Assembly (NCBI GenBank): GCA_002104905.1
Contig: MCFE01000597.1
Span: forward strand, 1-54,798
DNA: 54,798 nt
Source of the DNA: Basidiobolus meristosporus CBS 931.73
Lineage: Eukaryota; Fungi; Basidiobolomycota
Direction: 5' to 3'
Both the position numbers and the translations under genes were made by a program. The notes beneath the pieces were generated by a model that was given only the letters and a program-made list of their open reading frames with translations, was not told the origin of the DNA and made no database searches. Every line of letters starts with the position of its first letter. Position 1 is the first letter of the stretch. Of the stretch, positions 15,129 to 35,024 are shown one piece after another.

Positions 15129-15461
15129 ACTTGTAACATACTAATAGGAATTTGAAAAAGCATCTTGGGGATGCTTTCCTGCTGATACGGAGCAAGTTTA
15201 GAGTAGGTAAATGATCCACTACATACTACATTTTAACTTACTGTAACAGAGCAATTTGATGTTATTCAAGAGAACAACAAGATGTATTACTTCCCAGCAT
15301 AGAAGCTGAGTGGATCCCAGCTTATAAGACAATACATGGCTTGGAAAGCACTGTAAATATTTAGGTCTGAATCAATTTCCCCTATAGTATTGACAACAAT
15401 AAATGATGTATATCTTTCCTTAGAAAAAGCTAAGAAAAGCCCTGTACAATACCATCAAAAC

Positions 15462-16390: not shown

Positions 16391-19133
16391 GCCACAAAAA
16401 TAGGCATTTTCTCACACGCTAGCGGGTTCTATAGATAATTCAGCACCGTTCTACTTGGGAGTCTTGGAAAGTTTTAGATTTGCTGAAACATCCTGTTGAT
16501 CCTCTCCCAAGATCAAATCCGGGAGTTAATCTTGCTTTTTCTAACAAGTTGCATACATATGCCGCCCTGGAAAAGATGATGAGTGGCGCAATAGATCCGC
16601 AATGACGCAATTCATTCTCTATCAGGGGAATTGTTACTCCTAATTACTCTATTGGTAGAGAGATTCATCAAATCCAGCAGAAAAAATAAGGTTGTTTAGT
16701 TATACCCTTTAACAAGCACCTCAGGGAAAGCTTAGGCAAGTATTGTTATACCATGTGGGTGTTCGCGAAGGTAGCCTTTGCCGCCAATTGTGTTTAGATC
16801 CCTGCACCAGGCTTGGTGTTCGATTAGGCTTGATAGGCATGAAGGGCAAAACACTCGATCGATCTTTCCTTCCTTTAAGCTCTGTTTGCTATATGCTTAC
16901 ACCACCCGGAGTACTAGCCTAGGCTGTTGTGACGAGAACCGCCGAATCTATGGAAAATGTGATTCGCGGGCTCATATCTGCAGCGTACTAGCAATATCAT
17001 CACGAAGCCAGCACTCATTAAACACATATTTCCCCTTCATATGGCTCAACAAGTGCCTAGCAATACCAACAATACGCTTTGATGTACTCCAGGCTCCACT
17101 TTTATCGGACATTCAGTAGGTGCTCAATAGACTGGCCGTTGACTGCTGTCTGCCTTGCGACAGCTCCAACTTCAGATCAACCGCCAATTCGATTCACTCC
17201 ACTGGCTCTCGGAGATCTGGAAAGCGAATTTGAAGTTGGATTTTCTTTGCCTATTACTTTAACATGAAGGTCATGGTAGTGGCTGGATTCTGTGGATTTG
17301 ACGAGAAATCCCCTCACCAAGCCGTAATTCATATCTCGGGCATCCCATGTCAATATAGATGGATCCTCAGCGAGGTATCCCGCCAGCTTTTCCAGACTCC
17401 GAAGGGCTTTTCATTGGTTCATGCATAGAAATTTCCACCCTGCAACTGCCCAGATAGTGCGTTGATTTTCTACATTCAAGCGACCTTCTTACAATTGTGG
17501 CAAGCCTCACCTGGTCACCTTCAAGCCCAAGCTGGGCGTTGTGGATGGCTGATTGCTAAGTCAGTTGATTTAGTGTCGGTGTTCGAGACATAAGGTGTTT
17601 GGTCATATCTCTGTACCAAAGTGAGGCATCATTTAGCTGGTTGGTCGCTATTTGTAGCCTTCAACGGTACCACAGGCTTCATTTGAGCAAACTTGGCTTG
17701 CTTATCAGCCAAACACAGGTCTGATGAACCCACTTTTACTATCTTGCGGTCCGGATGTGTTGGCCTGTATCACCACATATGTCACGATGTGGATAGCCTT
17801 TTCCCTCACCGTGACAGATAGGCTACAAGTTTGGGAGCTACCCTTGTAGTGATGAGGCTTCTCTCTCCCTTCAGTGGCGCGAAGAGCCCTCCAATCGCCT
17901 GGTATTGAGTTTCGCGAAGAGGTGTGCCGCATATGTCGATGTCGGCATATCTCAGTCTAGAAGCGAGCAGAGCCTGGATCCCCAAGAAACCCATATCCAC
18001 CGATGCCAGCCAACGTAAGAATTTATTGCCAATAGATGAGGTGGGCACAGAGTAGTCCCCTCAATGCATTTTCATTATCAGTTGCAGGTCCTTTGTAGAC
18101 CAGGGAGTTCGTTCCTCTACCTATACCTTATTCAACAATCCTATTTTTGACCCACCAATCACAGTCCGAAGGTCGAAAACATTTCCGGGATTTCTTCGAT
18201 CAAACCGCTGAAGAATTTCCATCTATTATCGAATGCATGAGCTTCCCGAATTTGAGTTGCTGAGCCCTTGCCGAGAGTCAGGTGCGAGGTTGACCGATCC
18301 TTATTGGTGCAGCGCGCTGCTTGCAGTCAACTTGGTGCACAGACCACTTATTGTCCCAATAACCAGCGATCCTCCAGCACCGAAAAAGCTGGATGTCGTA
18401 TTTTTCAATCCAATTAAGAGATCCGCATCTTTTTAGGAAGTCCCCATCATTGATCACTCCGAAATTGGAGTATAAACAGATGGACCATTCATCCCGCCAG
18501 GACGCTTATCTATTGGCTGAAGGACAATGTTGCCTGCCTCCTACCACACTCCCATCCAGGATGGACCGAGCCTTGATACCGGAATAAATCAGGTATCCTT
18601 GACAAAAGCCTCCGTAGATTGTGGTTCAGAATGGAAGCGCGATTAAGCAGAGTACTCACGATTGATATGGATACTGGATGTAGACCAAGAGTGCCTAATG
18701 TGTAGGTTATCTGGACAGGAGCCGAGGTGACCTTGGGTTTCGGGATCATTTTTCGCACCGTTCTCTCTCGTCGCCTCCAATCCGAACAAGTGTGGAAAAT
18801 CATCCGGATTTGGTTTCCCAAGAAGCTATATGGGGACCGAAGTCCCACATCCCAGGAAGGATTTATTTCTGTTTTCCGCAGGGCTCACGATTGCGGAAGT
18901 ATGTTCTCCCTGGCGATAACCATCAATCCTTCTCAATCAGATTCACTAGATATCTCCCTCAGTCTCGATTCGGCTGGGTGATGTGTTTCAATTCTCCCAT
19001 CGCAACACGCGTTCCGAGATAGTGGCCAAATTTTGGAACAAAGGGTTTTATTGTTTCTCTTTAATATTACATAGTTACACCGGATGGGTGCGGGAATTGG
19101 TTCTACCCCGTTTGTTCTACAAGTGATTCTAAT

Positions 19134-22100
19134 CTATGGCCAGTCACAGATGATGGATTGGCCGTTCGTTTTACATACCGTCCCGGCGGCACAGTGGTTT
19201 TCGTAAAGCTGGCCGTTAGCGCAGATGGTGAACTTGTCAGAGATTCCTGAAAGGGCGCATTCATAGGCACCATTAACACATTTGGCCCCCGTGGGCTCAG
19301 TGGTGGGATTGGAGGTGACGGTGACCGTGGATGGAGCGCAGTTTTCTTTGATAGTTACTGTCTTGACGGGAGCATGAACGGTAACAGTCACTGGCTCGGC
19401 AACCACTGTGACTGTGGGCTGCGAGATGACAGTTGGGACAGCGGTGACCGTGATGGTCTCAGTGTAGGCTGGTTGGTGCTCAACAACATCAATAGTGACG
19501 GTCTTCACAGGCAACTCAGTATTTCTATCAGATCCCCGAGCTGCAGTTGGTACAGCAACTTCAGTACCCGTAGAAACAATAGCTTCCGTGGTGATAGTGG
19601 TGTATTCATTATCACCAGCTGTCTTCACAATCGTACGATATATGGTTTCATCTTGTTGACCGTTGCCGTCATTGGAATGATGTCCATTTGTGGCTACTGA
19701 GGCAGTGTGGGTAGCCTCTGGAGTCTGACTCTCAACAGTAGTGGAACTCTGGTAATCAATGGTTTCTCTAACAGTTTGAGTATATGTGCGCACTTGAGCC
19801 CCTCCGCTACCACTCAAAGATTCAGTAGCGGTGACAAATACGGTATCAGTGTTTACACGCTCCGAAGACTGCCTTTGATGAGTAGCAGGGTTTACGTGAG
19901 TAGAACGACTGGCCTTTGGAGTCTCATTTCCAGCAGCCCTACCGGGTCCGGTAACCTTAGCACTTTGAGTTTCCTTAGTGTAGTAGGCAGAGGAATGACC
20001 TTGAGAGTTACCATTGCTATTGATGGATTCGGTCACAGTGTAGTAAACAGTGTCAGTATCAGTATCAATGCTCTCGTAGTGTCCACTGTTGGAGGGATGC
20101 TCCTTGTGAGCGTCAGAGCTCAAGTGAGCAGAGTGGGTAGCCTTGGGAGATTCACCTCCAGAAGCGCTACCATGTCCGGTAGCCCTGGCACTATGAGTTT
20201 CCTTGGTGGAATGGGCAGAAGAATGACCTTGAGAGTTTCCATTGCCATTGATAGTATCAGTCACAGTGTGATAAACAGTGTCAGTATCAGTTTCAATGCT
20301 CTCGTGGTGTCCACTGCTGGATGGATGCTCGTTGTGAGCGCCAGAGCTCAAGTGAGCAGAGTGGGTAGCCTTGGGAGATTCACTTCCAGAAGCGCTACTG
20401 TGTCCAGTAGCCTTAGCATCTTGAGTTTCCTTAGTGGAGTAGGCAGAGGAATGGCCTCGTGAGTTACCATTACCATTGATAGTATCAGTCACGGTGTAGT
20501 AAACAGTGTCAGTATCAGTATCAATGCTCTCGTAGTGTCCACTGTTGGAGGGATGCTCCTTGTGAGCGCCAGAGCTCAAGTGAGCAGAGTGAGTGGCCTT
20601 GGGAGATTCACTTCCAGAAGCACTACCGTGTCCAGTAGTCCTGGCACTTTGAGTTTCCTCGGTGGAGTAGGCAGAGGAATGACCTTGAGAGTTACCATTA
20701 CCATTGATAGTATCAGTCACGGTGTAGTAAACGGTGTCAGTATCAGTTTCAATGCTCTCGTGGTGTCCACTGCTGGATGGATGCTCGTTGTGAGCGCCAG
20801 AGCTCAAAGGAGCAGAGTGGGTAGCCTTGGGAGATTCACTTCCAGCAGCGCTACCAGTTTCAATGCTCTCGTAGTGTCCACTATTGGAGGGATGCTCGTT
20901 GTGAGCGCCAGAGCTCAAAGGAGCAGAGTGGGTAGCCTTGGGAGATTCACTTCCAGCAGCGCTACCAGTTTCAATGCTCTCGTAGTGTCCACTATTGGAG
21001 GGATGCTCGTTGTGAGCGCCAGAGCTCAAGTGAGCAGAGTGGGTAGCCTTGGGAGATTCACTTCCAGAAGCGCTACCATGTCCGGTAGCCCTGGCACTTT
21101 GAGTTTCCTTGGTGGAGTGGGCAGAAGAATGTCCTTGAGAGTTACCATTACCATTGATAGTATCAGTCACGGTGTAGTAAACGGTGTCAGTATCAGTTTC
21201 AATGCTCTCGTGGTGTCCACTGCTGGATGGATGCTCGTTGTGAGCGCCAGAGCTCAAAGGAGCAGAGTGGGTAGCCTTGGGAGATTCACTTCCGGCAACG
21301 CTACCATGTCCGGTTATTCTGGCACTTTGAGTTTCCTTGGTGGAGTGGGCAGAGGAGTGGCCTTGAGAGTTACCATTACCATTGATAGTATCAGTCACAG
21401 TGTGATAAACAGTGTCAGTATCAGTTTCAATGCTCTCGTAGCGTCCACTGTTGGAGGGGTACTCGTTGTGAGCACTCTGGCTTAATTGGGCGGAGTGGGT
21501 AGCCTTTGGAGACTCGTGTGATGCAGCAGACGCTGGTGCAGTTACCGTTACATCATGAGTAACGGTATGCGTTTCCGTACGGATTGAGTAATGAACCACG
21601 CTTCTCGCGGATTGATGCATTACCGAAGCAGGACTATGGCTACTAAGTGGGTTTCTATTCACTGTTTCATACTTAATAATTGTATCAACAACAGTGGTAA
21701 CGACCGTTTCAGTGGTAACCGGAATGGTTCGTACTTGGGTAGGTTTTTGCGACTCGGCCGACTTGGAAACAATTTGTGGTTCTGTTGACACAGTGATTCC
21801 ATGAGATTCAACGGACCCGGCGGATCTGTGAGCACCTGAAGATTCGGACGGCTTGTGTGACTCCACTGACTGAGTTTCCTTGGGAGACCTGGAGGACTCA
21901 GTTGGCCCGTAAGATTCAGCGGACTTGGTAGATCTATGCGCAGCTGAGGATTCAGAGTGTTTGTGCGACCCGTCAGATTGGCTTTCTTTACGAGACACAG
22001 TGGGCTTGTGAGATTCATCGGATTCGGTAGATCTATGAGTATTGGGGGGTTCATCAGGCTTGCGAGATTCCTTAGGCTTACGAGACTCAACAGATTTGCT

Positions 22101-25100
22101 TTCCATACGGGACTCCGAAGACTCGGTTGGCTTGTGAGACTCAGCTGACTCAGAGGCCTTAGTGGACTTATAAGATTCAACAGACTTGGTAGATATATAA
22201 GACTGAGTGGACTCGGAAGATCTATGAGAAGCTGAAGACTCCATAGATTTGTGAGTAGCTGCTGATTCGCTAGCCTTCTGAGACTCAACCGATTGACGTC
22301 TCTTACGAGACTCGGAAGCCTCAGTTGGCTTGTGAGACTCAACGGGTTCGGTAGATCTATAAGGAGCGGAAGATTCAATGGGCTTGTAAGATCTAACGGA
22401 TTCAGTAGACCTATTAGTGTTAGAGGTTTCGACATGCTTGCGAGAATCAGTTGGCTTCTGGGGCTTCGAAGATTCGGTTGAATGGTGATGTTCAGCAGAC
22501 TCAGTTGATTTGTGCGCAGCCGATGATTCGGAGTGCTTGGGCGTCTCGACCGGTTTGACTTCCTTATGAGACACAGAGGCCTCAGTTGGCTTGTGAGATT
22601 CAACGGATGTAGTAGATCTATGAGTGTTCGAGGATTCAGCTGGCTTGCGAGATTCAACAGACTCGGTAGATCTATGGGCAGCTGATGATTCAGCGTGCTT
22701 GGTCAACTTCGCCGACTTGCTTTCCTTACGAGACTCGGAGGCCTCAGTGGGCTTGCGAGATTCAACGGATTTAGTAGATCTATGAGTGTTCGAGGATTCA
22801 GCAGGCTTGAGAGATTTAACAGACTCGGTAGATCTGTGGGCAGCTGATGATTCAGCGTGCTTGGTCAACTTCGCCGACTTGCTTTGCTTACGAGACTCGG
22901 AGGCCTCAGTAGGCTTGTCTGTCTGAACGGACTCGATGGATCTGTGAGTAGTTGTGGGCTCAACGGGCTTGCGAGACTCCTCAGATTTACTTCCCTTCTG
23001 GGACTCTAAAGATTCGGTAGATCTGTGCGAGGCTGATGACTCAATTGGTTTGCGAGATTCATTGGACTCGGTCGATCTGTGAGTTGCCGTGGATTTAGCA
23101 GATTTCTGAGTTTCCGTATGCGTACGAGACTCAACAGATTTGCCTTCCCTACGGGACTCCGAAGACTCAGCGGACCTGTGAGATTCAACGGACTCAGAGG
23201 CCTTGGTGGACTGGTGAGATTCAGACTCGGTCGATCTGTGAGTTGTCGTGGATTCAGTAGGCTTGCGGGATTCCGTCGGCTTAGGTGACTCAGCAGATTT
23301 GCTTTCTCTGCGGGGCTCCGAAGACTCAGTGGGCTTGTGAGACTCAACGGACTCAGTGGACCCGTGTGCAGCTGATGATTCAGAGTGCTTATGCGTCTCA
23401 ACAGATTTGCCTTCCTTATGGGATTCTGAAGACTTGGTTGGCTTGTGAGATTTAGCTGACTCGGAAGCTCTGTGAGTGCTCGACGCTTCGGCAGACTTTT
23501 GGGATTCTGTAGGCTTACGGGGCTCTACAGATTTGCTTTCCTTATGAGACTCCGAAGGCTCGACTGACTTGTGCGATTCAACAGACTCGGTGTATCTATG
23601 AGAAGCTGTTGATTCCGTTGGTTTGTGAGATTCATCGGACACAGTAGATCTGTGAGTTGTCGTAGATTCAGCAGATTTCTGAGATTCCGTATGCGTACGA
23701 GACTCGACAGATTTGCCTTCCCTACGGGACTCTGAAGACGCAGTGGGCTTGGGAGATTCAACGGACTCAGTAGATTCGTGTGCAGTTGATGATGCAGAGT
23801 GCTTGGGCGTTTCGACCGATTTGGCTTCTTTATGAGACTCAGAGGCGACAGTGGGCTTGTGAGATTCAATGGACTCCATGGATCTTTGAGTGTGAGAAGG
23901 TTCAGCAGGCTTATGTGACTCAGCAGATTTGCCTTCCCTATGGGACTCCGAAGATTCAGTGGGCTTGGGAGATTCAACGGACCCAGTAGATTCGTGTGCA
24001 GTTGATGATGCAGAGTGCTTGGGCGTCTCGACCGACTTGGCTTCCTTATGAGACTCTGAGGACGCAGTGTGCTTGTGAGATTGAATGGACTCTGTGGATC
24101 TGTGAGTGTGAGAAGGTTCAGCTGGCTTGTGCGATTCTGTAGGCTTACGGGGCTCTACAGATTTGCTTTCCTTATGATGCTCCGAAGACTCGGCTGATCT
24201 GTGGGATACAACAGACCCAGTGGAACTGTGCGAGACTGGTGATTCGGTTGGTTTGTGTGATTCATCGGACTCGGTCGATCTGTGGGCTGTTGTGGATTCC
24301 ACAGTCTTGCGGGATTCCGTAGACTTACGTGACTCAGTAGATTTGCTTTCTCTCCGGGTCTCCGAAGACTCAGTGGGCTTGTGAGACTCAACGGACTCAG
24401 TGGACCCGTGTGCAGCTGATGATTCAGAGTGCTTATGCGTCTCAACAGATTTGCCTTCCTTATGGGATTCTGAAGACTTAGTTGGCTTGTGAGATTCAGC
24501 GGACTCGGAAGCTCTGTGAGTGTTCGACGCTTCAGCAGGCTTTTGAGATTCTGTAGGCTTACGGGGCTCTGCGGATTTGCTTTCCTTATGAGACTCCGAA
24601 GACTCGACCGGCTTGAGAGATTCAACAGACTCAGTAGATCTGTGAGTGTTCGACGCTTCAGCTGGCTTTTGGGATTCTGTAGGCTTACGAGGCGCTACAG
24701 ATTGGCTTTCCTTATGGGATTCCGAAGACTTGGTGGGCTTGTGAGATTCAGCGGACTCGGAAGCTCTGTGAGTGTTCGACGCTTCAGTAGGCTTTTGAGA
24801 TTCTGTTGGCTTACGGGGCTCTACAGATTTGCTTTCCTTATGAGACTCCGAAGGCTCGACTGGCTTGTGCGATTCAACAGACTGGGTAGATCTATGAGAG
24901 GCTGGTGATTCAGTTGGTTTGTGAGATTCAACGGACTCAGTAGATATGTGAGTGTTCGAAGGTTCAGCTGACTTGTGCGATTCAGTTGGTTTACGAGGCT
25001 CTGCAGATTTGCTTTCCTGATGGGACTTCGAAGACTCGGCTGATCTGTGGGATGCAACAGAACCAGTGGAACTGTGCGAGACTGATGATTCGGTTGGTTT

Positions 25101-28100
25101 GTGTGATTCATCGGACTCGGTCGATCTGTGGGCTGTCGTGGATTCCACAGTCTTGCGGGATTCCGTAGACTTACGTGACTCAGCAGATTTGCTTTCTCTG
25201 CGGGGCTCCGAAGACTCAGTGGGCTTGTGAGACTCAACGGACTCAGTGGACCCGTGTGCAGCTGATGATTCAGAGTGCTTATGCGTCTCAACAGATTTGC
25301 CTTCCTTATGGGATTCTGAAGACTTGGTTGGCTTGTGAGATTTAGCTGACTCGGAAGCTCTGTGAGTGCTCGACGCTTCAGCAGGCTTTTGAGATTCTGT
25401 AGGCTTACGGGGCTCTACAGATTTGCTTTCCTTAGGAGACTCCGAAGGCTCGACTGACTTGTGCGATTCAACAGACTCGGTGGATCTGTGAGAAGCTGTT
25501 GATTCCGTTGGTTTGTGAGATTCATCGGACACAGTAGATCTGTGAGTTGTCGTAGATTCAGCAGATTTCTGAGATTCCGTATGCGTACGAGACTCGACAG
25601 ATTTGCCTTCCCTACGGGACTCTGAAGACGCAGTGGGCTTGGGAGATTCAACGGACTCAGTAGATTCGTGTGCAGTTGATGATGCAGAGTGCTTGGGCGT
25701 TTCGACCGATTTGGCTTCTTTATGAGACTCAGAGGCGACAGTGGGCTTGTGAGATTCAATGGACTCCATGGATCTTTGAGTGTGAGAAGGTTCAGCAGGC
25801 TTATGTGACTCAGTAGGCTTACGAGGCTCTACGGAGTTGCTTTCCTTATGATGCTCCGAAGACTCGGCTGACCTGTGGGGTACAGCAGACCCAGTGGAAC
25901 TGTGTGAGACTGGTGATTCAGTTGGTTTGTGAGATCTATCAGACTCGGTCGATCTGTGAGTTGTCGAAGATTCAGCAGGCTTGCGGGATTCCGTAGGCTT
26001 ACGTGACTTCGCAGATTTGTCTTCCCTATGGGACTTCGAAGACTCGGTTGGCTTGTGGGAATCAGCGGACTCAGAGGCCTTAGTGGGCTTGTGAGATTCA
26101 ATAGATTCCACAGATCTTGAGGCTAGTGAAGGCTCAGCAGGCTTGTGCGATTCTGTAGGTTTGCGAGGCTCAACAGATTTGCCTTCCCTACGGGACTCCG
26201 ACGACTCAACTGGCTTGTGAGAGGCTGGTGATTCAGTTGGTTTGTGAGATTCATCAGACTTGGTCAATCTGTGAGTGTGAGAAGGTTCAGCTGGCTTGTG
26301 TGATTCTGTAGGCTTACGGGGCTCTACAGATTTGCTTTCCTTATGATGCTCCGAAGACTCGGCTGATCTGTGGGATACAACAGACCCAGTGGAACTGTGC
26401 GAGACTGATGATTCGGTTGGTTTGTGTGATTCATCGGACTCGGTCGATCTGTGGGCTGTCGTGGATTCCACAGTCTTGCGGGATTCCGTAGACTTACGTG
26501 ACTCAGCAGATTTGCTTTCTCTGCGGGGCTCCGAAGACTCAGTGGGCTTGTGAGACTCAACGGACTCAGTGGACCCGTGTGCAGCTGATGATTCAGAGTG
26601 CTTATGCGTCTCAACAGATTTGCCTTCCTTATGGGATTCTGAAGACTTGGTTGGCTTGTGAGATTTAGCTGACTCGGAAGCTCTGTGAGTGTTCGACGCT
26701 TCAGCAGGCTTTTGAGATTCTGTAGGCTTACGGGGCTCTACAGATTTGCTTTCCTTAGGAGACTCCGAAGGCTCGACTGGCCTGTGCGATTCATCAGAAG
26801 CAGTAGATCTATCAGTGTTTGAAGGTTCAGCAGGCTTGTGTGATTCCGTCGGTTCACGAGGCTCTGTAGATTTGCTTTCCTGATGGGACTTCGAAGATCC
26901 GGTTGGCTTGTGAGATTCAACGGGCTCAGTGGATTTGTGTGCAGCTGATGACTCGAAGTGCTTGTGCGACTCAGCCGATTTGCTTTCCTTACGAGGTTCC
27001 GAGGATTCGGTAGATTTGTGAGCAGCTGATGATTCAGTGTGCCTGTGCGTCTCGATCGATTTGCTTTCTTTGTGAGATTTTGATGACTCAGATGGCTTTC
27101 GAGACTCAATGGACCCAGTAGATTTATGTGCAACTGATGACTCTGAGTGCTTGTGCGACTCAACTGATTTGCTTTCCTTGTGAGTCTCCGTCGACTCTGC
27201 TGCCTTGTGGGATTCAACAGACTTGGTAGATCTGTGAGAGGCTGGTGATTCAGTTGGCTTGTGTGCCCCATCGGATCCAGTAGATCTATGAGGGTGCGAG
27301 GGTTCAGCAGGTTTGTGAGATTCCGTAGGCTTAGGAGACTCGACAGATTTGTTTTCCTTGTGAGATTTTGAAGACTCGGTTGGTTTGTGAGATTCAGCTG
27401 ACACAGTAGATCTATGGGTAACTGATGACTCTGAGTGCTTGTGCGACTCGACCGATTTGCTTTCCTTACGAGACTCAGAGGTCTCAGTGGGCTCATGAGA
27501 TTTAACAGACTCGGCAGATCTGTGAGAGGCTGGGGACTCGGATGGTTTGTGAGATTCAGCGGACTCAACGGATCTATGAGTGCTTGAGGATTTAGCAGGT
27601 TTGCGAGTATCGATAGACTTAGGAGACTCAGAGGCCCTAGTGGAACTGCGAGAATCGGCGGATGCGGTAGATCTTAGAGTGCTTGAGGATTCAGTGGGCT
27701 TGTGGGTATCGGTATGCATACCAGACTCGATAGATTTACTGTCATTATGAGGTTCCGAAGATTTCGTTGGCTTGTGGGACTCGACGGACTCAGTAGATCT
27801 GTGAGAGACTGGTGATTCAGTTGGTTTGCGAGATTCCGTAGGCTTACGAGACACCACAGATTTGGTAGACTTGTTTACTGTGCTATTATCCAATGATTCT
27901 GTAGCCTTATGAGATTCCATAGACTTGCTTTGTTCACGGGACTTCGAAGACTCAATGGAGTTAGTAGGCTGCTGAGAGGTTGAGGGTATAACAGACTTGC
28001 TCTCTTTGTGGGAAGCTATTGGAGACTCCGAAGCAACAGTAGGCCTATGGGTTTCAGACCGTTCTGTAGGCTTATGAGATGTAGAAGACTCGGCAGGCTT

Positions 28101-31100
28101 GCGTGGCTCTACAGACTTGGTATCGCGGTGGGTCTGTGATGAGGCGATGCGCTTGTGTGTTTCAACAGTTGCCGAAGATTGATGAGAAACCGAAGTTTCA
28201 GTAGACTTATCAGATTTACTTGATTTGGTGGATTCGCGCACAGTTGAAGATCCTCGTGAATGATTCTTCAAGGTAGACGAGGCAGGCTTGGTAGATGGGC
28301 CAGTAGTGAAGGTATTAGCGTGCTTCTTACACTCAATACCGACAGCAGTGTTCATGCAAACTGAGTTGTCACCACAAGTGCCACTCCCAGTTGCCTTCGA
28401 ATTCTCACAAGTGACATAGTACGGCGAGCTGCCAGGAACGGTGCATCTCTCCTTCTGATCGCAAATGGGGGTGGATGTGCAAGGGTGAACTTGGTACGAG
28501 TGGGTGTTCTTCCCGCAGACCAAGCCCATTGGACATTGCTGCCATTCCCACACATTTCCGTTAGGTCCGGTGGTACAGGTTCGATAGGTGTTCACTCCTC
28601 CTTCAACGCAATGAGTAGAGCCAAGTGAGCAGCTAGCATCAGGAATACTTTCTACCGCCACACAGTTGATATTTTCACCGTCCTGTTCACATACTGTCCC
28701 ATTGTTACAATCATTCTCATACTCCTGTTCTTTGCTCCAGTAGTGGTATCTGTTGGATACTCCAGAGTTGAAGCACTTGGCATCCTTGCGACTACCTCTG
28801 ATATTGCTCGTGGGGTTTGGCTTGGTGCTGGAGGTTGTCGAGGATGAACTAGCAGAGCCCTGTGGGGGCACTCCACACTCCTTGAAAGCACCATTCTGCT
28901 CGATGCAGACTAGGCCTGTGCTGCACTCAGATGGAACCCATTTGCCGAACGAGCACTGACCAAAGTGCTTGGAATCAAGGCACTTGAATGTTCCCTCAGT
29001 GCAAGGCACATTTGAAGGACCAGCTTGCTGGCTACTGGTTGCTGCAGACGACAAAGAGATCTCGGATTGAGTATGCTTCTCCCTAGTTGTCACTGAATGT
29101 TGCTCGATAGATGTCGACGTTGGCTTAGTTTCTGAGCTTGTAGCTGTTGAGGGTTTGACGCTCGGTACTAATACCTGACTTTTAGAAAGTGTTTTCATTG
29201 GCGAAGTGCCTGGTTGGGTGGAAATCCTACTTGAATCATCTTTGGTATCAGCAGTTGACGTAGTCGAACTACTAGATGTATTGCCTCTTGCCGATGCTGA
29301 CTCGGTAGTGGGCGCCTTAGATGAGCTACTAGCACGTTTTTTACACTCGATCCCACTAGCAGTGTTCATACAGATTGAATTGTCACCACAGGTGCCACTT
29401 CCGGTTGCCTTCGAATTCTCGCAAGTGACATAGTACGGCGAGCTGCCAGGAACGGTGCATCTCTCCCTTTGATCGCAAATGGGGGTGGATGTGCAAGGGT
29501 ACACTAGGTACGAGTGGGTGTTCTTCCCGCAGACCAAGCCCATTGGACATTGCTGCCATTCCCACACATTTCCGTTAGGTCCGGTGGTACAGGTGCGATA
29601 GGTGTTCACTCCTCCTTCAACGCAATGGGTAGAGCCGAGGGCACACTTGTCGTCAGGAATGTTGGGCAACGCCACACAGTTGATGTTGTCGCCATCTTGC
29701 TCACATACTGTCCCGTTGTTACAATCGTTCGTGTACTCCTCGCCATTACTCCAGTAGTGGTATCTGTTGGACACTCCCGAGTTGAAGCACTTGGCATTCT
29801 TGCGATTACCTCTGATACTGCTGGTGGGGTTCGGCTTGGTGCTGGAGGTTGTCGAGGATGGACTAGCAGAGCCCTGTGGTGGCACTCCACACTCCTTGAA
29901 AGCACCATTCTGCTCGATGCAGACTAGGCCTGTGCTGCACTCAGATGGAACCCACTTGCCGAACGAGCACTGACCAAAGTGGGTGGAATCAAGGCACTTG
30001 AATGTTCCCTCAGTACAAGGCACGTTGGATGGCTCACCTTGCTTGCTGCTGGTTGCAGTAGATACTGATGATGATGATGTTGATAATGATGTAGGGTTCT
30101 TCGATTGAGTATGCTTTTCGATGGGTGTTGCTGACTGTTGGCCGGTAGACATCGACATTTCTTTGGTTTCTGAGCTTGTAGCAGCTGAAGGTTGGACGCT
30201 GGATGATGTAGTCATACTTTCAGTCAAAGTATTCATTGCCGAGCTGCTGGATGTAGTGTCTCTTGCCGATGCTGACTCGGTAGTATGTGACTTAGATGAG
30301 CTACTAGCACGCTGTTTACACTCGATGCCACTAGCAGTGTTCATACAGACTGAGTTAACACCACAAGTACCGCTCCCGGTTGCCTCCGAATTCTCACAAG
30401 TGACATAGTACGGCGAGCTGCCGGGAACGGTGCATCTCTCCTTCTGATCGCAAATGGGGGTGGATGTGCAAGGGTACACTTGGTACGAATGGGTGTTCTT
30501 CCCGCAGACCAAGCCCATTGGACATTGCTGCCATTCCCACACATTTCCGTTAGGTCCGGTGGTACAGGTGCGATAGGTGTTCACTCCTCCTTCAACGCAA
30601 TGGGTAGAGCCGAGGGCACACTTGTCGTCAGGAATGTTGGGCAACGCCACACAGTTGATGTTGTCGCCATCTTGCTCACATACTGTCCCGTTGTTACAAT
30701 CGTTCGTGTACTCCTCACCATTACTCCAGTAGTGGTATCTGTTGGACACTCCCGAGTTGAAGCACTTGGCATTCTTGCGATTACCTCTGATACTGCTGGT
30801 GGGGTTCGGCTTGGTGCTGGAGGTTGTCGAGGATGGACTAGCAGAGCCCTGTGGTGGCACTCCACACTCCTTGAAAGCACCATTCTGCTCGATGCAGACC
30901 AGTCCTGTGCTGCACTCAGATGGAACCCATTTGCCGAACGAGCACTGACCAAAGTGAGTGGAGTCGAGACACTTGAATGTTCCCTCAGTACAAGGCACGT
31001 TGGATGGCTCACCTTGCTTGCTGCTGGTTGCAGTAGATACTGATGATGATGATGTTGATAATGATGTGGGGTTCTTCGATTGAGTATGCTTTTCGATGGG

Positions 31101-34100
31101 TGTTGCTGACTGTTGGTCGGTAGACATCGACATTTGTTTGGTTTCTGAGCTTGTAGCAGCTGAAGGTTGGACGCTGGATGATGTAGTCAAACTCTCAGTC
31201 AAAGTATTCTTTGCCGAGCTGCTGGATGTAGTGTGTCTTGCCGATGCTGACTCGGTAGTATGTGACTTAGAGGAGCTACTAGCACGCTGTTTACACTCGA
31301 TGCCACTAGCAGTGTTCATACAGACTGAGTTAACACCACAAGTACCGCTCCCGGTTGCCTCCGAATTCTCACAAGTGACATAGTACGGCGAGCTGCCAGG
31401 AACGGTACATCTCTCCTTCTGATCGCAAATGGGGGTGGATGTGCAAGGGTACACTTGGTACGAATGGGTGTTCTTCCCGCAGACCAAGCCCATTGGACAT
31501 TGCTGCCATTCCCACACATTTCCGTTAGGTCCGGTGGTACAGGTGCGATAGGTGTTCACTCCTCCTTCAACGCAATGGGTAGAGCCGAGGGCACACTTGT
31601 CGTCAGGAATGTTGGGCAACGCCACGCAGTTGATGTTGTCGCCATCTTGCTCACATACTGTCCCGTTGTTACAATCGTTCGTGTACTCCTCGCCATTACT
31701 CCAGTAGTGGTATCTGTTGGACACTCCCGAGTTGAAGCACTTGGCATTCTTGCGATTACCTCTGATACTGCTGGTGGGGTTCGGCTTGGTGCTGGAGGTT
31801 GTCGAGGATGGACTAGCAGAGCCCTGTGGTGGCACTCCACACTCCTTGAAAGCACCATTCTGCTCGATGCAGACCAGTCCTGTGCTGCACTCAGATGGAA
31901 CCCATTTGCCGAACGAGCACTGACCAAAGTGAGTGGAATCAAGGCACTTGAATGTTCCCTCAGTACAAGGCACGTTGGATGGCTCACCTTGCTTGCTGCT
32001 GGTTGCAGTAGGTACTGATGATGATGCCGATAATGATGTGGGGTTCTTGGATTGAGTATGCTTTTCGATGGGTGTTACTGACTGTTGTTCGGTAGACTTC
32101 GACATTTGTTTGGTTTGTGAGCTTGTAGAAGCTGAAGGTTGGACGCTGAATGATGTGGTCAAACTCTCAGTCAAAGTATTCTTTGCCGAGCTCTTGGATG
32201 TAGTGTCTCTTGCCGATGCTGACTCGGTAGTGGGCGCCTTAGATGAGCTACTGGCACGTTTTTTACACTCGATCCCACTAGCAGTGTTCATACAGACTGA
32301 ATTGTCACCACAAGTGCCACTCCCGGTTGCCTCCGAATTCTCACAAGTGACATAGTACGGCGAGCTGCCAGGAACGGTGCATCTCTCCTTTTGATCGCAA
32401 ATGGGGGTGGATGTGCAAGGGTACACTTGGTACGAGTGGGTGTTCTTCCCGCAGACCAAGCCCATTGGACATTGCTGCCATTCCCACACATTTCCGTTAG
32501 GTCCGGTGGTACAGGTTCGATAGGTGTTCACTCCTCCTTCAACGCAATGGGTAGAGCCGAGGGCACACTTGTCGTCAGGAATGTTGGGCAACGCCACGCA
32601 GTTGATGTTGTCGCCATCTTGCTCACATACTGTCCCGTTGTTACAATCGTTCGTGTACTCCTCGCCATTACTCCAGTAGTGGTATCTGTTGGACACTCCC
32701 GAGTTGAAGCACTTGGCATTCTTGCGATTACCTCTGATACTGCTGGTGGGGTTCGGCTTGGTGCTGGAGGTTGTCGAGGATGGACTAGCAGAGCCCTGTG
32801 GTGGCACTCCACACTCCTTGAAAGCACCATTCTGCTCGATGCAGACTAGGCCTGTGCTGCACTCAGATGGAACCCACTTGCCGAACGAGCACTGACCAAA
32901 GTGGGTGGAATCAAGGCACTTGAATGTTCCCTCAGTACAAGGCAAGTTTGATGGCTCACCTTGCTTGCTGCTGGTTGCAGTAGATACTGATGATGATGAT
33001 GTTGATAATGATGTGGGGTTCTTCGATTGAGTATGCTTTTCGATTGGTGTTGCTGACTGTTGTTCGGTAGACTTCGAAATTTGTTTGGTTTGTGAGCTTG
33101 TAGAAGCTGAAAGTTGGACGCTGGATGATGTGGTCAAACTCTCAGTCAAAGTATTCTTTGCCGAGCTCTTGGATGTAGTGTCTCTTGCCGATGCTGACTC
33201 GGTAGTATGTGACTTAGATGAGCTACTAGCACGCTGTTTACACTCGATGCCACTAGCAGTATTCATACAGACTGAATTGTCACCACAAGTGCCACTCCCG
33301 GTAGCCTCCGAATTCTCACAAGTGACATAGTACGGCGAGCTGCCAGGAACGGTGCATCTCTCCTTCTGATCGCAAATGGGGGTGGATGTGCAAGGGTACA
33401 CTTGGTACGAGTGGGTGTTCTTCCCGCAGACCAAGCCCATTGGACATTGCTGCCATTCCCACACATTTCCATTAGGTCCGGTGGTACAGGTTCGATAGGT
33501 GTTCACTCCTCCTTCAACGCAATGGGTAGAGCCGAGGGCACACTTGTCGTCAGGAATGTTGGGCAACGCCACACAGTTGATGTTGTCGCCATCTTGCTCA
33601 CATACTGTCCCGTTGTTACAATCGTTCGTGTACTCCTCACCATTACTCCAGTAGTGGTATCTGTTGGATACTCCCGAGTTGAAGCACTTGGCATCCTTGC
33701 GATTACCTCTGATACTGCTGGTGGGGTTCGGCTTGGTGCTGGAGGTTGTCGAGGATGGACTAGCAGAGCCCTGTGGTGGCACTCCACACTCCTTGAAAGC
33801 ACCATTCTGCTCGATGCAGACTAGGCCTGTGCTGCACTCAGATGGAACCCATTTGCCGAACGAGCACTGACCAAAGTGAGTGGAGTCGAGACACTTGAAT
33901 GTTCCCTCAGTACAAGGCACGTTTGATGGCTCACCTTGCTTGCTGCTGGTTGCAGTAGATACTGATGATGATGATGCTGATAATGATGTGGGGTTCTTCG
34001 ATTGAGTATGCTTTTCGATGGGTGTTGCTGACTGTTGGTCGGTAGACATCGACATTTGTTTGGTTTCTGAGCTTGTAGCAGCTGAAGGTTGGACGCTGGA

Positions 34101-35024
34101 TGATGTAGTCATACTTTCAGTCAAAGTATTCTTTGCCGAGCTCTTGGATGTAGTGTCTCTTGCCGATGCTGACTCGGTAGTGGGTGACTTAGAGGAGCTA
34201 CTAGCACGCTGTTTACACTCGATCCCACTAGCAGTGTTCATACAGACTGAGTTAACACCACAAGTACCGCTCCCGGTTGCCTCCGAATTCTCACAAGTGA
34301 CATAGTACGGCGAGCCGCCAGGAACGGTGCATCTCTCCTTCTGATCGCAAATGGGGGTGGATGTGCAAGGGTACACTTGGTACGAGTGGGTGTTCTTCCC
34401 GCAGACCAAGCCCATTGGACATTGCTGCCATTCCCACACATTTCCGTTAGGTCCGGTGGTACAGGTGCGATAGGTGTTCACTCCTCCTTCAACGCAATGG
34501 GTAGAGCCGAGGGCACACTTGTCGTCAGGAATGTTGGGCAACGCCACGCAGTTGATGTTGTCGCCATCTTGCTCACATACTGTCCCGTTGTTACAATCGT
34601 TCGTGTACTCCTCACCATTACTCCAGTAGTGGTATCTGTTGGATACTCCCGAGTTGAAGCACTTGGCATCCTTGCGATTACCTCTGATACTGCTGGTAGG
34701 GTTAGGCTTGGTGCTGGAGACGATGGAGGAGGATCTTTTTGGTGGCTCACCACACTCTTTGAACACACCATTCTCTGCGATGCAAACCAGGCCTGGTGCG
34801 CACTCTGATGCATCCCACTTCCCAAATACGCACTCTCCAAAATGCTTGGAGTCTAAACATGTGAAGGTACCTTCCGTACACTCGGTGGTGCTTGCAGCGC
34901 GTTTCACCAACCGGCGGTGATTGGCGGTATCATTTACGGAATCCAAAACCTTCCTGGGCTGCGGATACGCAGCAATCCCGGCCGCGATGGCAAAGACTGC
35001 TAATGCTTTCGTAGCGAGACGCAT
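19134..35024 (-). CDS. Giant secreted mucin/adhesin-like protein, 5296 aa, with ~29 CBM19-like Cys-rich modules and His-rich repeats
   Basis: A single stop-free ORF of 15.9 kb. The first ATG is at 35024 (MRLATKALAVFAIAAGIAA, a signal peptide; the ORF track starts at an upstream TTG). It has a pro-segment ending RRLVKR, seven units each with four C-x-C...C-x2-G-x-V-C modules, an S/E/H/K/T/P stalk, 76-aa repeats, a V/T-rich segment and a terminal module KCVNGAYEC...HCAAGTVCKTNGQSIICDWP. No C-terminal hydrophobic TM/GPI signal is visible. The CBM19 assignment rests on Cys/aromatic spacing recalled for PF03427 and was not run. Confidence 0.9.
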   Translation of the reverse strand: MRLATKALAVFAIAAGIAAYPQPRKVLDSVNDTANHRRLVKRAASTTECTEGTFTCLDSKHFGECVFGKWDASECAPGLVCIAENGVFKECGEPPKRSSSIVSSTKPNPTSSIRGNRKDAKCFNSGVSNRYHYWSNGEEYTNDCNNGTVCEQDGDNINCVALPNIPDDKCALGSTHCVEGGVNTYRTCTTGPNGNVWEWQQCPMGLVCGKNTHSYQVYPCTSTPICDQKERCTVPGGSPYYVTCENSEATGSGTCGVNSVCMNTASGIECKQRASSSSKSPTTESASARDTTSKSSAKNTLTESMTTSSSVQPSAATSSETKQMSMSTDQQSATPIEKHTQSKNPTSLSASSSSVSTATSSKQGEPSNVPCTEGTFKCLDSTHFGQCSFGKWVPSECSTGLVCIEQNGAFKECGVPPQGSASPSSTTSSTKPNPTSSIRGNRKDAKCFNSGVSNRYHYWSNGEEYTNDCNNGTVCEQDGDNINCVALPNIPDDKCALGSTHCVEGGVNTYRTCTTGPNGNVWEWQQCPMGLVCGKNTHSYQVYPCTSTPICDQKERCTVPGSSPYYVTCENSEATGSGTCGDNSVCMNTASGIECKQRASSSSKSHTTESASARDTTSKSSAKNTLTESLTTSSSVQLSASTSSQTKQISKSTEQQSATPIEKHTQSKNPTSLSTSSSSVSTATSSKQGEPSNLPCTEGTFKCLDSTHFGQCSFGKWVPSECSTGLVCIEQNGAFKECGVPPQGSASPSSTTSSTKPNPTSSIRGNRKNAKCFNSGVSNRYHYWSNGEEYTNDCNNGTVCEQDGDNINCVALPNIPDDKCALGSTHCVEGGVNTYRTCTTGPNGNVWEWQQCPMGLVCGKNTHSYQVYPCTSTPICDQKERCTVPGSSPYYVTCENSEATGSGTCGDNSVCMNTASGIECKKRASSSSKAPTTESASARDTTSKSSAKNTLTESLTTSFSVQPSASTSSQTKQMSKSTEQQSVTPIEKHTQSKNPTSLSASSSVPTATSSKQGEPSNVPCTEGTFKCLDSTHFGQCSFGKWVPSECSTGLVCIEQNGAFKECGVPPQGSASPSSTTSSTKPNPTSSIRGNRKNAKCFNSGVSNRYHYWSNGEEYTNDCNNGTVCEQDGDNINCVALPNIPDDKCALGSTHCVEGGVNTYRTCTTGPNGNVWEWQQCPMGLVCGKNTHSYQVYPCTSTPICDQKERCTVPGSSPYYVTCENSEATGSGTCGVNSVCMNTASGIECKQRASSSSKSHTTESASARHTTSSSSAKNTLTESLTTSSSVQPSAATSSETKQMSMSTDQQSATPIEKHTQSKNPTSLSTSSSSVSTATSSKQGEPSNVPCTEGTFKCLDSTHFGQCSFGKWVPSECSTGLVCIEQNGAFKECGVPPQGSASPSSTTSSTKPNPTSSIRGNRKNAKCFNSGVSNRYHYWSNGEEYTNDCNNGTVCEQDGDNINCVALPNIPDDKCALGSTHCVEGGVNTYRTCTTGPNGNVWEWQQCPMGLVCGKNTHSYQVYPCTSTPICDQKERCTVPGSSPYYVTCENSEATGSGTCGVNSVCMNTASGIECKQRASSSSKSHTTESASARDTTSSSSAMNTLTESMTTSSSVQPSAATSSETKEMSMSTGQQSATPIEKHTQSKNPTSLSTSSSSVSTATSSKQGEPSNVPCTEGTFKCLDSTHFGQCSFGKWVPSECSTGLVCIEQNGAFKECGVPPQGSASPSSTTSSTKPNPTSSIRGNRKNAKCFNSGVSNRYHYWSNGEEYTNDCNNGTVCEQDGDNINCVALPNIPDDKCALGSTHCVEGGVNTYRTCTTGPNGNVWEWQQCPMGLVCGKNTHSYLVYPCTSTPICDQRERCTVPGSSPYYVTCENSKATGSGTCGDNSICMNTASGIECKKRASSSSKAPTTESASARGNTSSSSTTSTADTKDDSSRISTQPGTSPMKTLSKSQVLVPSVKPSTATSSETKPTSTSIEQHSVTTREKHTQSEISLSSAATSSQQAGPSNVPCTEGTFKCLDSKHFGQCSFGKWVPSECSTGLVCIEQNGAFKECGVPPQGSASSSSTTSSTKPNPTSNIRGSRKDAKCFNSGVSNRYHYWSKEQEYENDCNNGTVCEQDGENINCVAVESIPDASCSLGSTHCVEGGVNTYRTCTTGPNGNVWEWQQCPMGLVCGKNTHSYQVHPCTSTPICDQKERCTVPGSSPYYVTCENSKATGSGTCGDNSVCMNTAVGIECKKHANTFTTGPSTKPASSTLKNHSRGSSTVRESTKSSKSDKSTETSVSHQSSATVETHKRIASSQTHRDTKSVEPRKPAESSTSHKPTERSETHRPTVASESPIASHKESKSVIPSTSQQPTNSIESSKSREQSKSMESHKATESLDNSTVNKSTKSVVSRKPTESRKPTESPVSHRSTESVESHKPTKSSEPHNDSKSIESGMHTDTHKPTESSSTLRSTASADSRSSTRASESPKSIDTRKPAKSSSTHRSVESAESHKPSESPASHRSAESVKSHEPTETSESRKESKSVESHKHSESSVTHRSTVSAESHKPTESSKSHKENKSVESPKPTESHKPAEPSHPHRSTGSDGAHKPTESPASHRSTKSVESHKAAESTETHKESKSVESHKHSESSVAHKSTGSIESRKPSESSKSHKESKSIETHRHTESSAAHKSTESSEPRKESKSAESHKHFESSAAHKSTEPVESHKPTGSSKSHQESKSTEPREPTESHKPAEPSNTDRSTASDESHRPVEPSESPKESKSVEPRKPTESQKPAEASNTHRASESAKSHKPTKSSESHKEGKSVETHKHSESSAAHGSTESVESHKPTESSEPRRESKSAESRKSTESRKTVESTTAHRSTESDESHKPTESSVSHSSTGSVVSHRSAESSEHHKESKSVEPRKPTESHKPAEPSHTHRLTKSDESHKPTESPASHKPVESSESRREGKSVEPRKPTESHKPAEPSLASRSVESIESHKPTKASESADSHKPTESSKSHREDKSAKSRKPTESRKPAESSTTHRSTESDRSHKPTESPVSHSSTGSAVPHRSAESSEHHKESNSVEPRKPTESHKPAEPSHTQRSMESIESHKPTVASESHKEAKSVETPKHSASSTAHESTESVESPKPTASSESRREGKSVESRTHTESQKSAESTTTHRSTVSDESHKPTESTASHRSTESVESHKSVEPSESPKESKSVEPRKPTESQKPAEASSTHRASESAKSHKPTKSSESHKEGKSVETHKHSESSAAHGSTESVESHKPTESSEPRRESKSAESRKSTESRKTVESTTAHRSTESDESHKPTESSVSHSSTGSVASHRSAESSKSHQESKSAEPRKPTESHKSAEPSNTHISTESVESHKPTESPASHRSTQSVESHKPVEPSESHKESKSVEPRKPTESQKPTEASNTHRASESAESHKPTKSSESHKESQSVAPRKPTESQKPAEASNTHRSTESVESLKPVESSESHKESKSAEPRKPTESQKPAEASNTHRASESAESHKPTKSSESHKEGKSVETHKHSESSAAHGSTESVESHKPTESSETRRESKSTESRKSTESRKTVESTTAHRSTESDESHKPTESPVSHSSTGSVVSHRSAESSEHHKESKSVEPRKPTESHKPAEPSHTHRSTESIQSHKHTASSESHKEAKSVETPKHSASSTAHESTGSVESPKPTESSESHREGKSAESHKPAEPSHTQRSMESIESHKPTVASESHKEAKSVETPKHSASSTAHESTESVESPKPTASSESRREGKSVESRTHTESQKSAESTTTHRSTVSDESHKPTESTASHRYTESVESHKSVEPSESHKESKSVEPRKPTESQKSAEASSTHRASESAKSHKPTKSSESHKEGKSVETHKHSESSAAHGSTESVESHKPTESSEPRRESKSAESPKPTESRKPTESTTTHRSTESESHQSTKASESVESHRSAESSESRREGKSVESRTHTETQKSAKSTATHRSTESNESRKPIESSASHRSTESLESQKGSKSEESRKPVEPTTTHRSIESVQTDKPTEASESRKQSKSAKLTKHAESSAAHRSTESVKSLKPAESSNTHRSTKSVESRKPTEASESRKESKSAKLTKHAESSAAHRSTESVESRKPAESSNTHRSTTSVESHKPTEASVSHKEVKPVETPKHSESSAAHKSTESAEHHHSTESSKPQKPTDSRKHVETSNTNRSTESVRSYKPIESSAPYRSTEPVESHKPTEASESRKRRQSVESQKASESAATHKSMESSASHRSSESTQSYISTKSVESYKSTKASESAESHKPTESSESRMESKSVESRKPKESRKPDEPPNTHRSTESDESHKPTVSRKESQSDGSHKHSESSAAHRSTKSAESYGPTESSRSPKETQSVESHKPSESSGAHRSAGSVESHGITVSTEPQIVSKSAESQKPTQVRTIPVTTETVVTTVVDTIIKYETVNRNPLSSHSPASVMHQSARSVVHYSIRTETHTVTHDVTVTAPASAASHESPKATHSAQLSQSAHNEYPSNSGRYESIETDTDTVYHTVTDTINGNGNSQGHSSAHSTKETQSARITGHGSVAGSESPKATHSAPLSSGAHNEHPSSSGHHESIETDTDTVYYTVTDTINGNGNSQGHSSAHSTKETQSARATGHGSASGSESPKATHSAHLSSGAHNEHPSNSGHYESIETGSAAGSESPKATHSAPLSSGAHNEHPSNSGHYESIETGSAAGSESPKATHSAPLSSGAHNEHPSSSGHHESIETDTDTVYYTVTDTINGNGNSQGHSSAYSTEETQSARTTGHGSASGSESPKATHSAHLSSGAHKEHPSNSGHYESIDTDTDTVYYTVTDTINGNGNSRGHSSAYSTKETQDAKATGHSSASGSESPKATHSAHLSSGAHNEHPSSSGHHESIETDTDTVYHTVTDTINGNGNSQGHSSAHSTKETHSARATGHGSASGGESPKATHSAHLSSDAHKEHPSNSGHYESIDTDTDTVYYTVTESINSNGNSQGHSSAYYTKETQSAKVTGPGRAAGNETPKASRSTHVNPATHQRQSSERVNTDTVFVTATESLSGSGGAQVRTYTQTVRETIDYQSSTTVESQTPEATHTASVATNGHHSNDGNGQQDETIYRTIVKTAGDNEYTTITTEAIVSTGTEVAVPTAARGSDRNTELPVKTVTIDVVEHQPAYTETITVTAVPTVISQPTVTVVAEPVTVTVHAPVKTVTIKENCAPSTVTVTSNPTTEPTGAKCVNGAYECALSGISDKFTICANGQLYENHCAAGTVCKTNGQSIICDWP
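19950..21500 (-). repeat. Coding tandem repeat: six 228-nt (76-aa) units plus two 111-nt (37-aa) half units
   Basis: The TDTDTVY(Y/H)TVTDTINGNGNSQGHSS..SESPKATHSA..HESIE motif recurs with spacings of 228, 228, 228, 450 and 228 nt. Confidence 0.9.
21790..28320 (-). repeat. Low-complexity hierarchical coding repeat (S[HR]K[PS][TA]ES), ~2200 aa
   Basis: The 6-7-aa motif is nested in ~0.5-kb blocks that recur 2-4 times, e.g. near 26760-26270, 25440-24990, 24590-24110 and 23560-23260. Confidence 0.9.
28330..34885 (-). repeat. Seven near-identical ~975-nt coding units, each with four Cys-rich modules and Ser/Thr linkers
   Basis: Equivalent positions fall at 34639, 33664, 32689, 31717, 30742, 29767 and 28753 (spacings 975, 975, 972, 975, 975, 1014). 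Confidence 0.95.

Follow-up and report, generated by a model that had tools for sequence, protein, structure and literature searches.

A giant intronless gene of Basidiobolus meristosporus for a secreted protein with 29 Cys modules of CBM14/CBM19-like fold, a candidate multivalent chitin binder

The window analyzed here is the entire 54,798-bp contig MCFE01000597.1 of assembly GCA_002104905.1, from Basidiobolus meristosporus. Basidiobolus is a gut- and insect-associated fungus. The minus strand of this contig carries one intact, intronless 15.9-kb open reading frame (ORF) for a protein of 5,296 amino acids (aa), made of Cys modules, a long Cys-free stalk and shorter repeats. Such a locus raises the question of what the protein is, i.e., (i) whether the frame is that of a functional gene; (ii) to which family or fold its Cys modules belong; (iii) what an array of that size would do in a fungus. 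The anatomy of the protein, the assignment of its modules at fold level, the purifying selection acting on them and, as far as searches reach, the restriction of the four-module unit to one lineage are shown below. The function is proposed from sequence, models and analogy: the protein would be a multivalent chitin binder of the peritrophin or Jacob-lectin type that cross-links, coats or tethers chitin, a reading to which we give about an even chance.

Anatomy of the gene and selection on its modules

A previous sequence-only reading of this DNA had described a signal peptide, a pro-region ending in KR, seven times four Cys modules, a stalk rich in Ser, Glu, His and Lys, 76-aa repeats and one terminal Cys module, with neither catalytic domain nor transmembrane (TM) segment nor glycosylphosphatidylinositol (GPI) tail. 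All these elements are found again. The frame opens with ATG at 35024 and contains zero internal stops across its 5,296 codons. The features, with their coordinates on the window, are the following:

19134..35024, minus strand: coding sequence, complete and intronless, 5,296 codons plus stop at 19134-19136
34968..35024, minus strand: predicted signal peptide, aa 1-19, MRLATKALAVFAIAAGIAA
34899..34967, minus strand: short pro-region with LVKR (aa 39-42) at its end, a kexin-type dibasic site (putative cleavage)
28329..34880, minus strand: head, aa 49-2232, seven A-B-C-D superrepeats, i.e., 28 Cys modules plus Ser/Thr-rich linkers
21765..28304, minus strand: stalk, aa 2241-4420, an S/E/K/H/T/P polyampholyte devoid of Cys and balanced in charge, whose residues follow a period of three, [E/K]-[S/P]-[H/T/S/V]
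19926..21515, minus strand: array of 76-aa repeats rich in His, Ser and Gly, aa 4504-5033, each containing the beta-prone motif DTDTVYYTVTDTING
19293..19925, minus strand: pre-tail, aa 5034-5244, Thr/Val/Ile-rich and beta-prone, e.g., YTETITVTAVPTVISQPTVTVVAEPVTVTV
19137..19292, minus strand: module T, 6 Cys, aa 5249-5293, ending in ...IICDWP at the stop

The N-terminus contains the most hydrophobic 19-aa window of the whole protein (Kyte-Doolittle value, KD, of 1.6), with a predicted cleavage MRLATKALAVFAIAAGIAA/YPQ, and it resembles that of a relative from Basidiobolus ranarum, KAK9710459.1 (P0001; ...VVVAYPQ). Secretion is thus supported. A Pfam scan over the full length gives no catalytic domain, which rules out an enzyme function. 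Hydropathy, used as a crude test, gives no second hydrophobic segment, i.e., no TM signal, and no GPI signal either: the last 20 aa have a mean KD of 0.06 and the C-terminus is a Cys module. Anchoring by GPI or by a TM segment is ruled out on the same basis. The absence of enzyme domain, TM segment and GPI tail, together with the array of Cys modules, leads to the reading of a giant secreted, non-enzymatic lectin-mucin.

The seven superrepeats start at aa 49, 371, 696, 1020, 1345, 1670 and 2008 (34880, 33914, 32939, 31967, 30992, 30017 and 29003 on the window). Each is about 325 aa long and contains modules A, B, C and D with 6, 4, 6 and 6 Cys, respectively; a Ser/Thr-rich linker of about 100 aa follows each of the first six. 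The copies are 84-98.5% identical in DNA, so that each of them is distinct. For all pairs of superrepeats, the ratio of non-synonymous to synonymous rates (dN/dS) of the Cys modules is between 0 and 0.15; the 193 module codons compared between superrepeats 2 and 3 contain 13 synonymous changes and not a single non-synonymous one. The Ser/Thr-rich linkers of the same superrepeats have a dN/dS of 0.4-0.8. Since the differences between modules are nearly all synonymous, the frame is read and the folded modules are under strong purifying selection.

These values bear on the simplest alternative, i.e., that the region is non-functional or mis-assembled and that its frame is open by happenstance. 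The contig is gene-poor with many transposon relics, no entry for the gene turned up in the public protein collection within the lengths searched and there is no RNA run among those listed, all of which would fit such an alternative. Nevertheless, an open frame of 5,296 codons is beyond chance, the dN/dS of the modules is that of a constrained sequence, all superrepeat copies are distinct, and independent short-read contigs confirm the 3' end. The alternative is thus hardly credible, and a chance ORF or a pseudogene is rejected on the dN/dS of the modules. The short-read check concerns the non-repetitive 3' end of the gene: contigs of the source sample match 17500-19900 with 0 mismatches, module T and the stop included.

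Three observations made on the same material must be added. First, a run of the same study labelled as a different organism contains pieces at least 99% identical to 17718-17975, 18184-18331 and 18491-18777, with no mismatches listed. These pieces lie downstream of the gene, and the run does not contain the coding 3' end; they may be repeats that both have in common, or else the run may derive, at low coverage, from the same strain or one nearly identical to it. Second, a second short-read contig of the source sample overlies module T (19168-19206), from which it differs at 7 of 39 bases. It has a depth of about 280 vs. about 106 for the gene, i.e., about 2.7 times, and an overhang that translates to FAGSIICDWP. 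Such a divergent and deeper contig points to T-like tails in other, probably multi-copy, genes of this genome. Third, superrepeats 3 and 6 are the only ones to end in ...ECKKRASSSSKAPTTES (32259-32264 and 29337-29342; aa 921-922 and 1895-1896), the others ending in ...ECKQRASSSSKS(H/P)TTES. Their dS of 0.043 is also the lowest of all pairs. The shared ends and the lowest dS hint at a higher-order duplication of three superrepeats.

Family, fold and distribution of the Cys modules

The sequence-only reading had called about 29 modules CBM19-like. Their membership was judged by the Pfam gathering scores, i.e., 20.1 bits for CBM_19 (PF03427) and 22.1 bits for CBM_14 (PF01607, peritrophin-A). One example of each type of head module is given here:

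33774..33929, minus strand: module A, aa 366-417, above the CBM_19 cutoff (25.9 bits vs. 20.1)
33237..33707, minus strand: modules B, C and D, aa 440-596, no Pfam match; CBM14/19-like by profile and model

Module A is above the CBM_19 cutoff (25.9 and 24.3 bits) in seven stretches of the head, the match being partial (profile positions 25-58 of 61). Modules B and C have no Pfam match and module D gives noise only (EGF_3, Opy2); 21 modules out of 29 are thus without any Pfam family. Module T is below both cutoffs, with 19.5 bits for CBM_14 (17.9 on a shorter cut) and 14.8 bits for CBM_19. No module at all passes the CBM_14 family test, since T is below the cutoff and the others have no match. 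When this protein and its database relatives are taken together, 13 of 17 aligned modules of the A, C and T types match CBM_19.

The module types are nevertheless related to each other. Profile-profile comparisons (hhalign) tie T to B (E 7e-8), D (2.5e-6), A (9e-6) and C (8e-5), and also A to C (5e-5) and B to D (3e-5). When the Cys columns are kept fixed and the other columns shuffled, none of 30 shuffles reaches the observed score (z from 6 to 17); the similarity among module types thus exceeds a common Cys framework. Aromatic residues are conserved before Cys4 in modules A, B, C and T.

One A-B-C-D unit was modelled with AlphaFold2 on an alignment of seven sequences. The mean predicted local distance difference test (pLDDT) is 63, with about 78 for A, 58 for B, 63 for C and 78 for D; module A ranges from 78 to 89 across models. 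A model from the single sequence, good for module A only, is superseded by this one. All four modelled modules consist of a short strand and two hairpins. The published description of the CBM14 fold is that of three N-terminal plus two C-terminal antiparallel strands with disulfides C1-C3, C2-C6 and C4-C5, and the modelled plan agrees with this 3+2 arrangement. Cys1 and Cys3 are jointly absent from the B modules and from the C module of a second B. ranarum relative, KAK9663756.1 (P0002), which is what a C1-C3 disulfide predicts.

Structure searches with the unit lead to the same group of proteins. Among Swiss-Prot models, Foldseek gives peritrophin-48 (E 2.5e-5), then CPG-2, obstructor-E and CBD-1, the aligned residues being 1-231. 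Among the AFDB clusters, it gives a 'CBM family 19 domain-containing protein' (E 2e-9), many chitin-binding type-2 proteins and an insect intestinal mucin. In the PDB, the top match is EHEP, which has three CBM14 domains (E 2.7e-3), followed by Blo t 12; the first model only also matched the CHIT1 domain and Avr4. With VIA-align against the PDB, module A matches the CBM14 domain of CHIT1 (Z 6.1) and Der p 23 (Z 5.2), and the B-C region, mainly module C, matches Avr4 (Z 4.6). The ESM Atlas matches are peritrophin I and Zoopagomycota GH18 chitinases bearing CBM_19; the leads from Atlas feature searches are all below threshold and concern clusters of CBM_14 and CBM_19 as well as proteins of Ascomycota labelled 'CBM19 domain-containing'. 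By sequence, the A-B-C-D unit finds nothing significant in the PDB; with the module profile, the best matches are an eggshell Cys-rich protein (E 0.0036) and the CBM14 domain of CHIT1 (E 0.07).

Sequence and models together support the assignment of all 29 modules to the CBM14/19 clan at fold level, seven of them (A) being CBM19 by the family's own test. The CBM19-like label of the sequence-only reading thus holds for the fold and, against PF03427, for module A. At family level it is not retained for B, C and D, which are unmatched, nor for T, which is below both cutoffs. Likewise, structure prediction followed by Foldseek did retrieve tandem CBM14/CBM19 proteins, albeit from a model of moderate confidence.

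An exhaustive HMMER scan of one A-B-C-D unit against 1.84 billion representative proteins gives 10 matches at E <= 1e-3. Only two are strong, both annotated 'hypothetical protein' in B. ranarum: P0001 (517 aa, module order B-C-D-A-B-C-D, E 1e-36) and P0002 (386 aa, module order A-B-C-D, E 3e-32). Both are about 37% identical to the query, with conserved Cys positions except for Cys1 and Cys3 of module C in P0002. It must be noted that P0002 runs to the end of its contig (JASJQH010011619.1, 1,601 bp) and that the translation of this locus is not exactly the deposited product: P0002 is probably truncated and the annotation may fall short of the full B. ranarum gene. The remaining eight matches are small secreted proteins with tandem modules of the A or C type, five of which are at or near the Pfam CBM_19 cutoff.

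No giant homologue was found in the proteins searched. Word-seeded searches of a 5.8-billion-protein set returned nothing, the protein itself included, be it for the head among proteins of 2,913-9,268 aa, for one superrepeat among those of 179-569 aa or for the C-terminal 140 aa among those of 275-875 aa; proteins of 570-2,900 aa were left out of the head search. The A-B-C-D alignment gave no confirmed relative when prokaryotic genomes and JGI metagenomes were scanned. Within the reach of these searches, the A-B-C-D unit appears specific to Basidiobolus, and public protein sets seem to lack the gene at the lengths covered. Secretome comparisons of early-diverging fungi may thus miss giant intronless repeat genes of this sort.

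Stalk, proposed function and alternatives

The stalk is 2,180 aa long and matches no Pfam family. It contains 26% Ser, 15% Glu, 11% Lys, 10% Thr, 8% His and 7% Pro. Its charges are balanced (354 Lys plus Arg, 345 Asp plus Glu, and 179 His), with a fraction of charged residues of 0.32 and a net charge per residue of 0.004. They are also better mixed than in shuffled sequences (delta 0.036 vs. 0.058 +/- 0.003; kappa about 0.11). Identity recurs at all lags divisible by three, up to at least 63 residues: Glu or Lys at position 1, Ser or Pro at position 2, and His, Thr, Ser or Val at position 3, in phase over more than 1,200 residues. A phase shift is seen near aa 3800-4100. His is followed by Lys or Arg 127 times (29 expected) and S-x-E occurs 156 times (85 +/- 7 expected). 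The computed net charge is +14 at pH 8, +53 at pH 7, +151 at pH 6, +412 at pH 4 and +531 at pH 2, and the contour length is about 785 nm. By analogy with the polymer behaviour of well-mixed strong polyampholytes, the stalk would be an expanded flexible chain that becomes a polycation in acid. Whatever its function, a chain of this length with a strict three-residue period, well-mixed and balanced charges and about one His per 12 residues is of interest for polymers and biomaterials. The array that follows the stalk comprises six full 76-aa units, two half units (37 aa) and one degenerate unit, with a DNA period of 228.

The multivalent chitin-binding reading may be described as follows. The signal peptide would be removed, and kexin would then probably cleave at LVKR. 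The mature protein would have a block of 28 disulfide-knotted CBM14/19-clan modules at one end and a single such module at the opposite end, separated by about 3,000 residues of putatively disordered and probably O-glycosylated sequence. The modules would bind chitin non-covalently and with high avidity, and the protein would cross-link, coat or tether chitin fibrils in the Basidiobolus wall or at the spore surface. The stalk would act as a long hydrated spacer, near neutral at pH 7-8 and strongly cationic in acid.

Several points weigh against this reading: (i) the model of the unit is only moderately confident, given its mean pLDDT of 63 and the low values of B and C; (ii) every match to a solved structure has Z < 8, and the Foldseek matches in the PDB have E > 1e-3; (iii) no solved structure matches B or D specifically, their fold assignment coming mainly from profile similarity to T; (iv) EHEP and Der p 23 have the CBM14 fold and do not bind chitin; (v) the copy number of superrepeats and of the array rests on one assembly. 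The chitin binding, location, glycosylation and pH behaviour of the protein are inferred.

Point (iv) leads to a second alternative, i.e., that the modules have the CBM14/19 fold but recognise polyphenols, a different glycan or a protein instead of chitin, in a mucin-like barrier or scavenger unrelated to chitin. EHEP, the top PDB match of Foldseek, binds phlorotannin with its three CBM14 domains, and for modules B, C and D Pfam gives no chitin-binding family. On the contrary, the A modules pass CBM_19, the best overall fold matches are chitin-binding proteins, and the aromatics before Cys4 are conserved in A, B, C and T. We thus consider a ligand other than chitin as quite unlikely.

Dibasic sites allow a third alternative, in which kexin would free smaller multi-module lectins and stalk fragments from a polyprotein precursor and the giant form would never act as such. 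KR is found at aa 41, 96, 922, 1896, 2291 and 4241, with recurrent RR in the stalk; in superrepeats 3 and 6, the sites at 922 and 1896 lie just past module D, and the B. ranarum relatives are small, with one or two units. However, KR is present at two of the six superrepeat junctions and QR at the others, so that kexin sites are not a regular design. A regular Kex2 polyprotein is rejected on this count, and a polyprotein precursor seems very unlikely.

The location of the 28-module head with respect to the wall matters for a fourth alternative. The sequence-only reading had tethered the protein to the fungus's own wall by the lone C-terminal module, with the head outward. Such an orientation is plausible because T-like tails recur in the genome; the reverse one is equally possible since 28 modules would bind more strongly than one. 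In the outward-facing case, the protein could be an adhesin or glue, held on the spore or hypha, perhaps via the C-terminal module, while the head grips foreign chitin. The insect exoskeleton would be the obvious target, and the polyampholyte stalk and beta-prone repeats would give cohesion. The capilloconidia of Basidiobolus have adhesive tips and adhere to insect exoskeletons (PMC10964425; PMC13370150). The head-stalk-tail plan resembles that of fungal adhesins, the 76-aa repeats and the tail contain beta-prone segments rich in Thr, Val and Ile, and the recurrence of T-like tails is a weak point in favor of a common tail module. Nevertheless, cuticular chitin is largely under the epicuticle, a one-module anchor is weaker than 28 modules and could have the reversed orientation, and nothing discriminates the binding of foreign chitin from that of the fungus's own wall. 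A glue of this kind is rather unlikely.

A bolder proposition can be made, and we hold it as tentative and rather improbable. The protein might be a giant member of a class of surface proteins proper to Basidiobolus, in which a non-covalent C-terminal chitin-binding module replaces the GPI or Pir anchors of other fungi and the periodic, charge-balanced, His-rich stalk goes from neutral to polycationic in acid. The 28-module head would then be either the glue by which capilloconidia adhere to insect cuticle or a coat protecting the wall on its way through an acidic, chitinase-rich gut.

The surroundings of the gene add no partner to it. The gene lies in an island of 46-51% GC; the flanks are AT-rich (37-40% GC) at 4000-16000 and 40000-50000. 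No functionally linked neighbour gene is found in the flanks: about 4-5 kb without convincing ORFs extend on each side, followed by transposon relics. The downstream AT-rich block contains a copia-type reverse transcriptase (RT) fragment and an integrase core (43526-44149 and 48353-48808). A Ty3-type pol in two overlapping ORFs (RT, RNase H, integrase zinc finger) is located at 52269-54436, near the contig end and outside this block (44-46% GC). One ordinary gene only was noticed on the contig (1390-2517, minus strand); it has no introns and encodes a 375-aa oxidoreductase of the GFO/IDH/MocA type. Adjoining it, at about 540-798 on the plus strand, the public annotation has a 66-aa product with a weak ribonuclease T2 match.

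Comparison with known systems

Multivalent chitin-binding mucins are known in animals (peritrophic matrix, nematode eggshell) and in amoebae (cyst wall). The sequence-only reading knew of no characterised protein with the present architecture, and the literature and protein searches give none either. In the literature searched, no characterised fungal protein of such architecture was found, nor any characterised fungal multivalent chitin-binding mucin, a fortiori of such size; fungal CBM19 occurs there only as appendages of chitinases or in small uncharacterised secreted proteins. Multi-module chitin-binding mucins are thus an already known kind, and what is new here is the occurrence in a fungus, the size, the restriction to Basidiobolus and the periodic, putatively pH-switchable stalk. 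If chitin binding is true, the protein is a candidate for the adhesive that fixes capilloconidia to insects, and also for a factor that lets a chitinous wall survive in the gut of vertebrates feeding on insects.

Peritrophins, intestinal mucins and CBD-1 cross-link, coat or tether chitin in their own matrices, a role also proposed for the Jacob lectins. For the A-B-C-D unit as a whole, the best matches in fold are insect peritrophins and intestinal mucins (e.g., peritrophin-48), and the present protein has their architecture: it is secreted, with tandem Cys modules (six Cys in theirs), Ser/Thr-rich mucin stretches as linkers and neither enzyme domain nor anchor. They differ by their origin, i.e., the animal gut, and by their family, CBM14, whereas the contig belongs to a fungal assembly, the relatives are from Basidiobolus only, and the A modules are CBM19 by Pfam. 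The protein is thus not a member of the animal peritrophic matrix. The identity is 12-16%; peritrophins are also far below 5,296 aa and have neither the 2,180-aa His-rich stalk nor the lone C-terminal module. In the same manner, CBD-1 and CPG-1/2 of the C. elegans eggshell are secreted multi-CBM14 scaffolds of a chitin layer that match at fold level; none of these animal proteins exceeds 1,319 aa, and they have other linkers and no His-rich stalk.

The closest proteins by sequence, the B. ranarum P0001 and P0002, share the A-B-C-D order and the Cys positions, and P0001 also a similar signal peptide. They have only one or two units, without stalk, 76-aa repeats or T module, and are uncharacterised.

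Among fungal proteins, Avr4 (Cladosporium fulvum, Pseudocercospora fuligena) is a secreted chitin binder of the CBM14 fold to which the B-C region is matched, and its solved structure 6bn0 is a complex with chitin hexasaccharide. Avr4 is reported to shield fungal chitin from chitinases. It differs as a single-domain, small effector of plant pathogens. The GPI adhesins of yeasts (Als, Flo, Epa) have a ligand-binding head, a long Ser/Thr-rich beta-prone stalk and a C-terminal attachment to the wall, putative in the present case, and a weak Atlas lead goes to Als and flocculin clusters. However, there is no GPI signal here, the putative anchor is a non-covalent Cys module and the heads are unrelated.

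The Jacob lectins of Entamoeba belong to the 'wattle and daub' cyst wall, where a cross-linking of chitin fibrils has been proposed for them (PMC2698119). They resemble the present protein by tandem 6-Cys chitin-binding domains with conserved aromatics and by Ser/Thr-rich spacers, which are glycosylated in the lectins. They differ from it by the number of domains (3-7), which are Entamoeba-specific, by the absence of any sequence relationship found and by the lack of a polyampholyte stalk.

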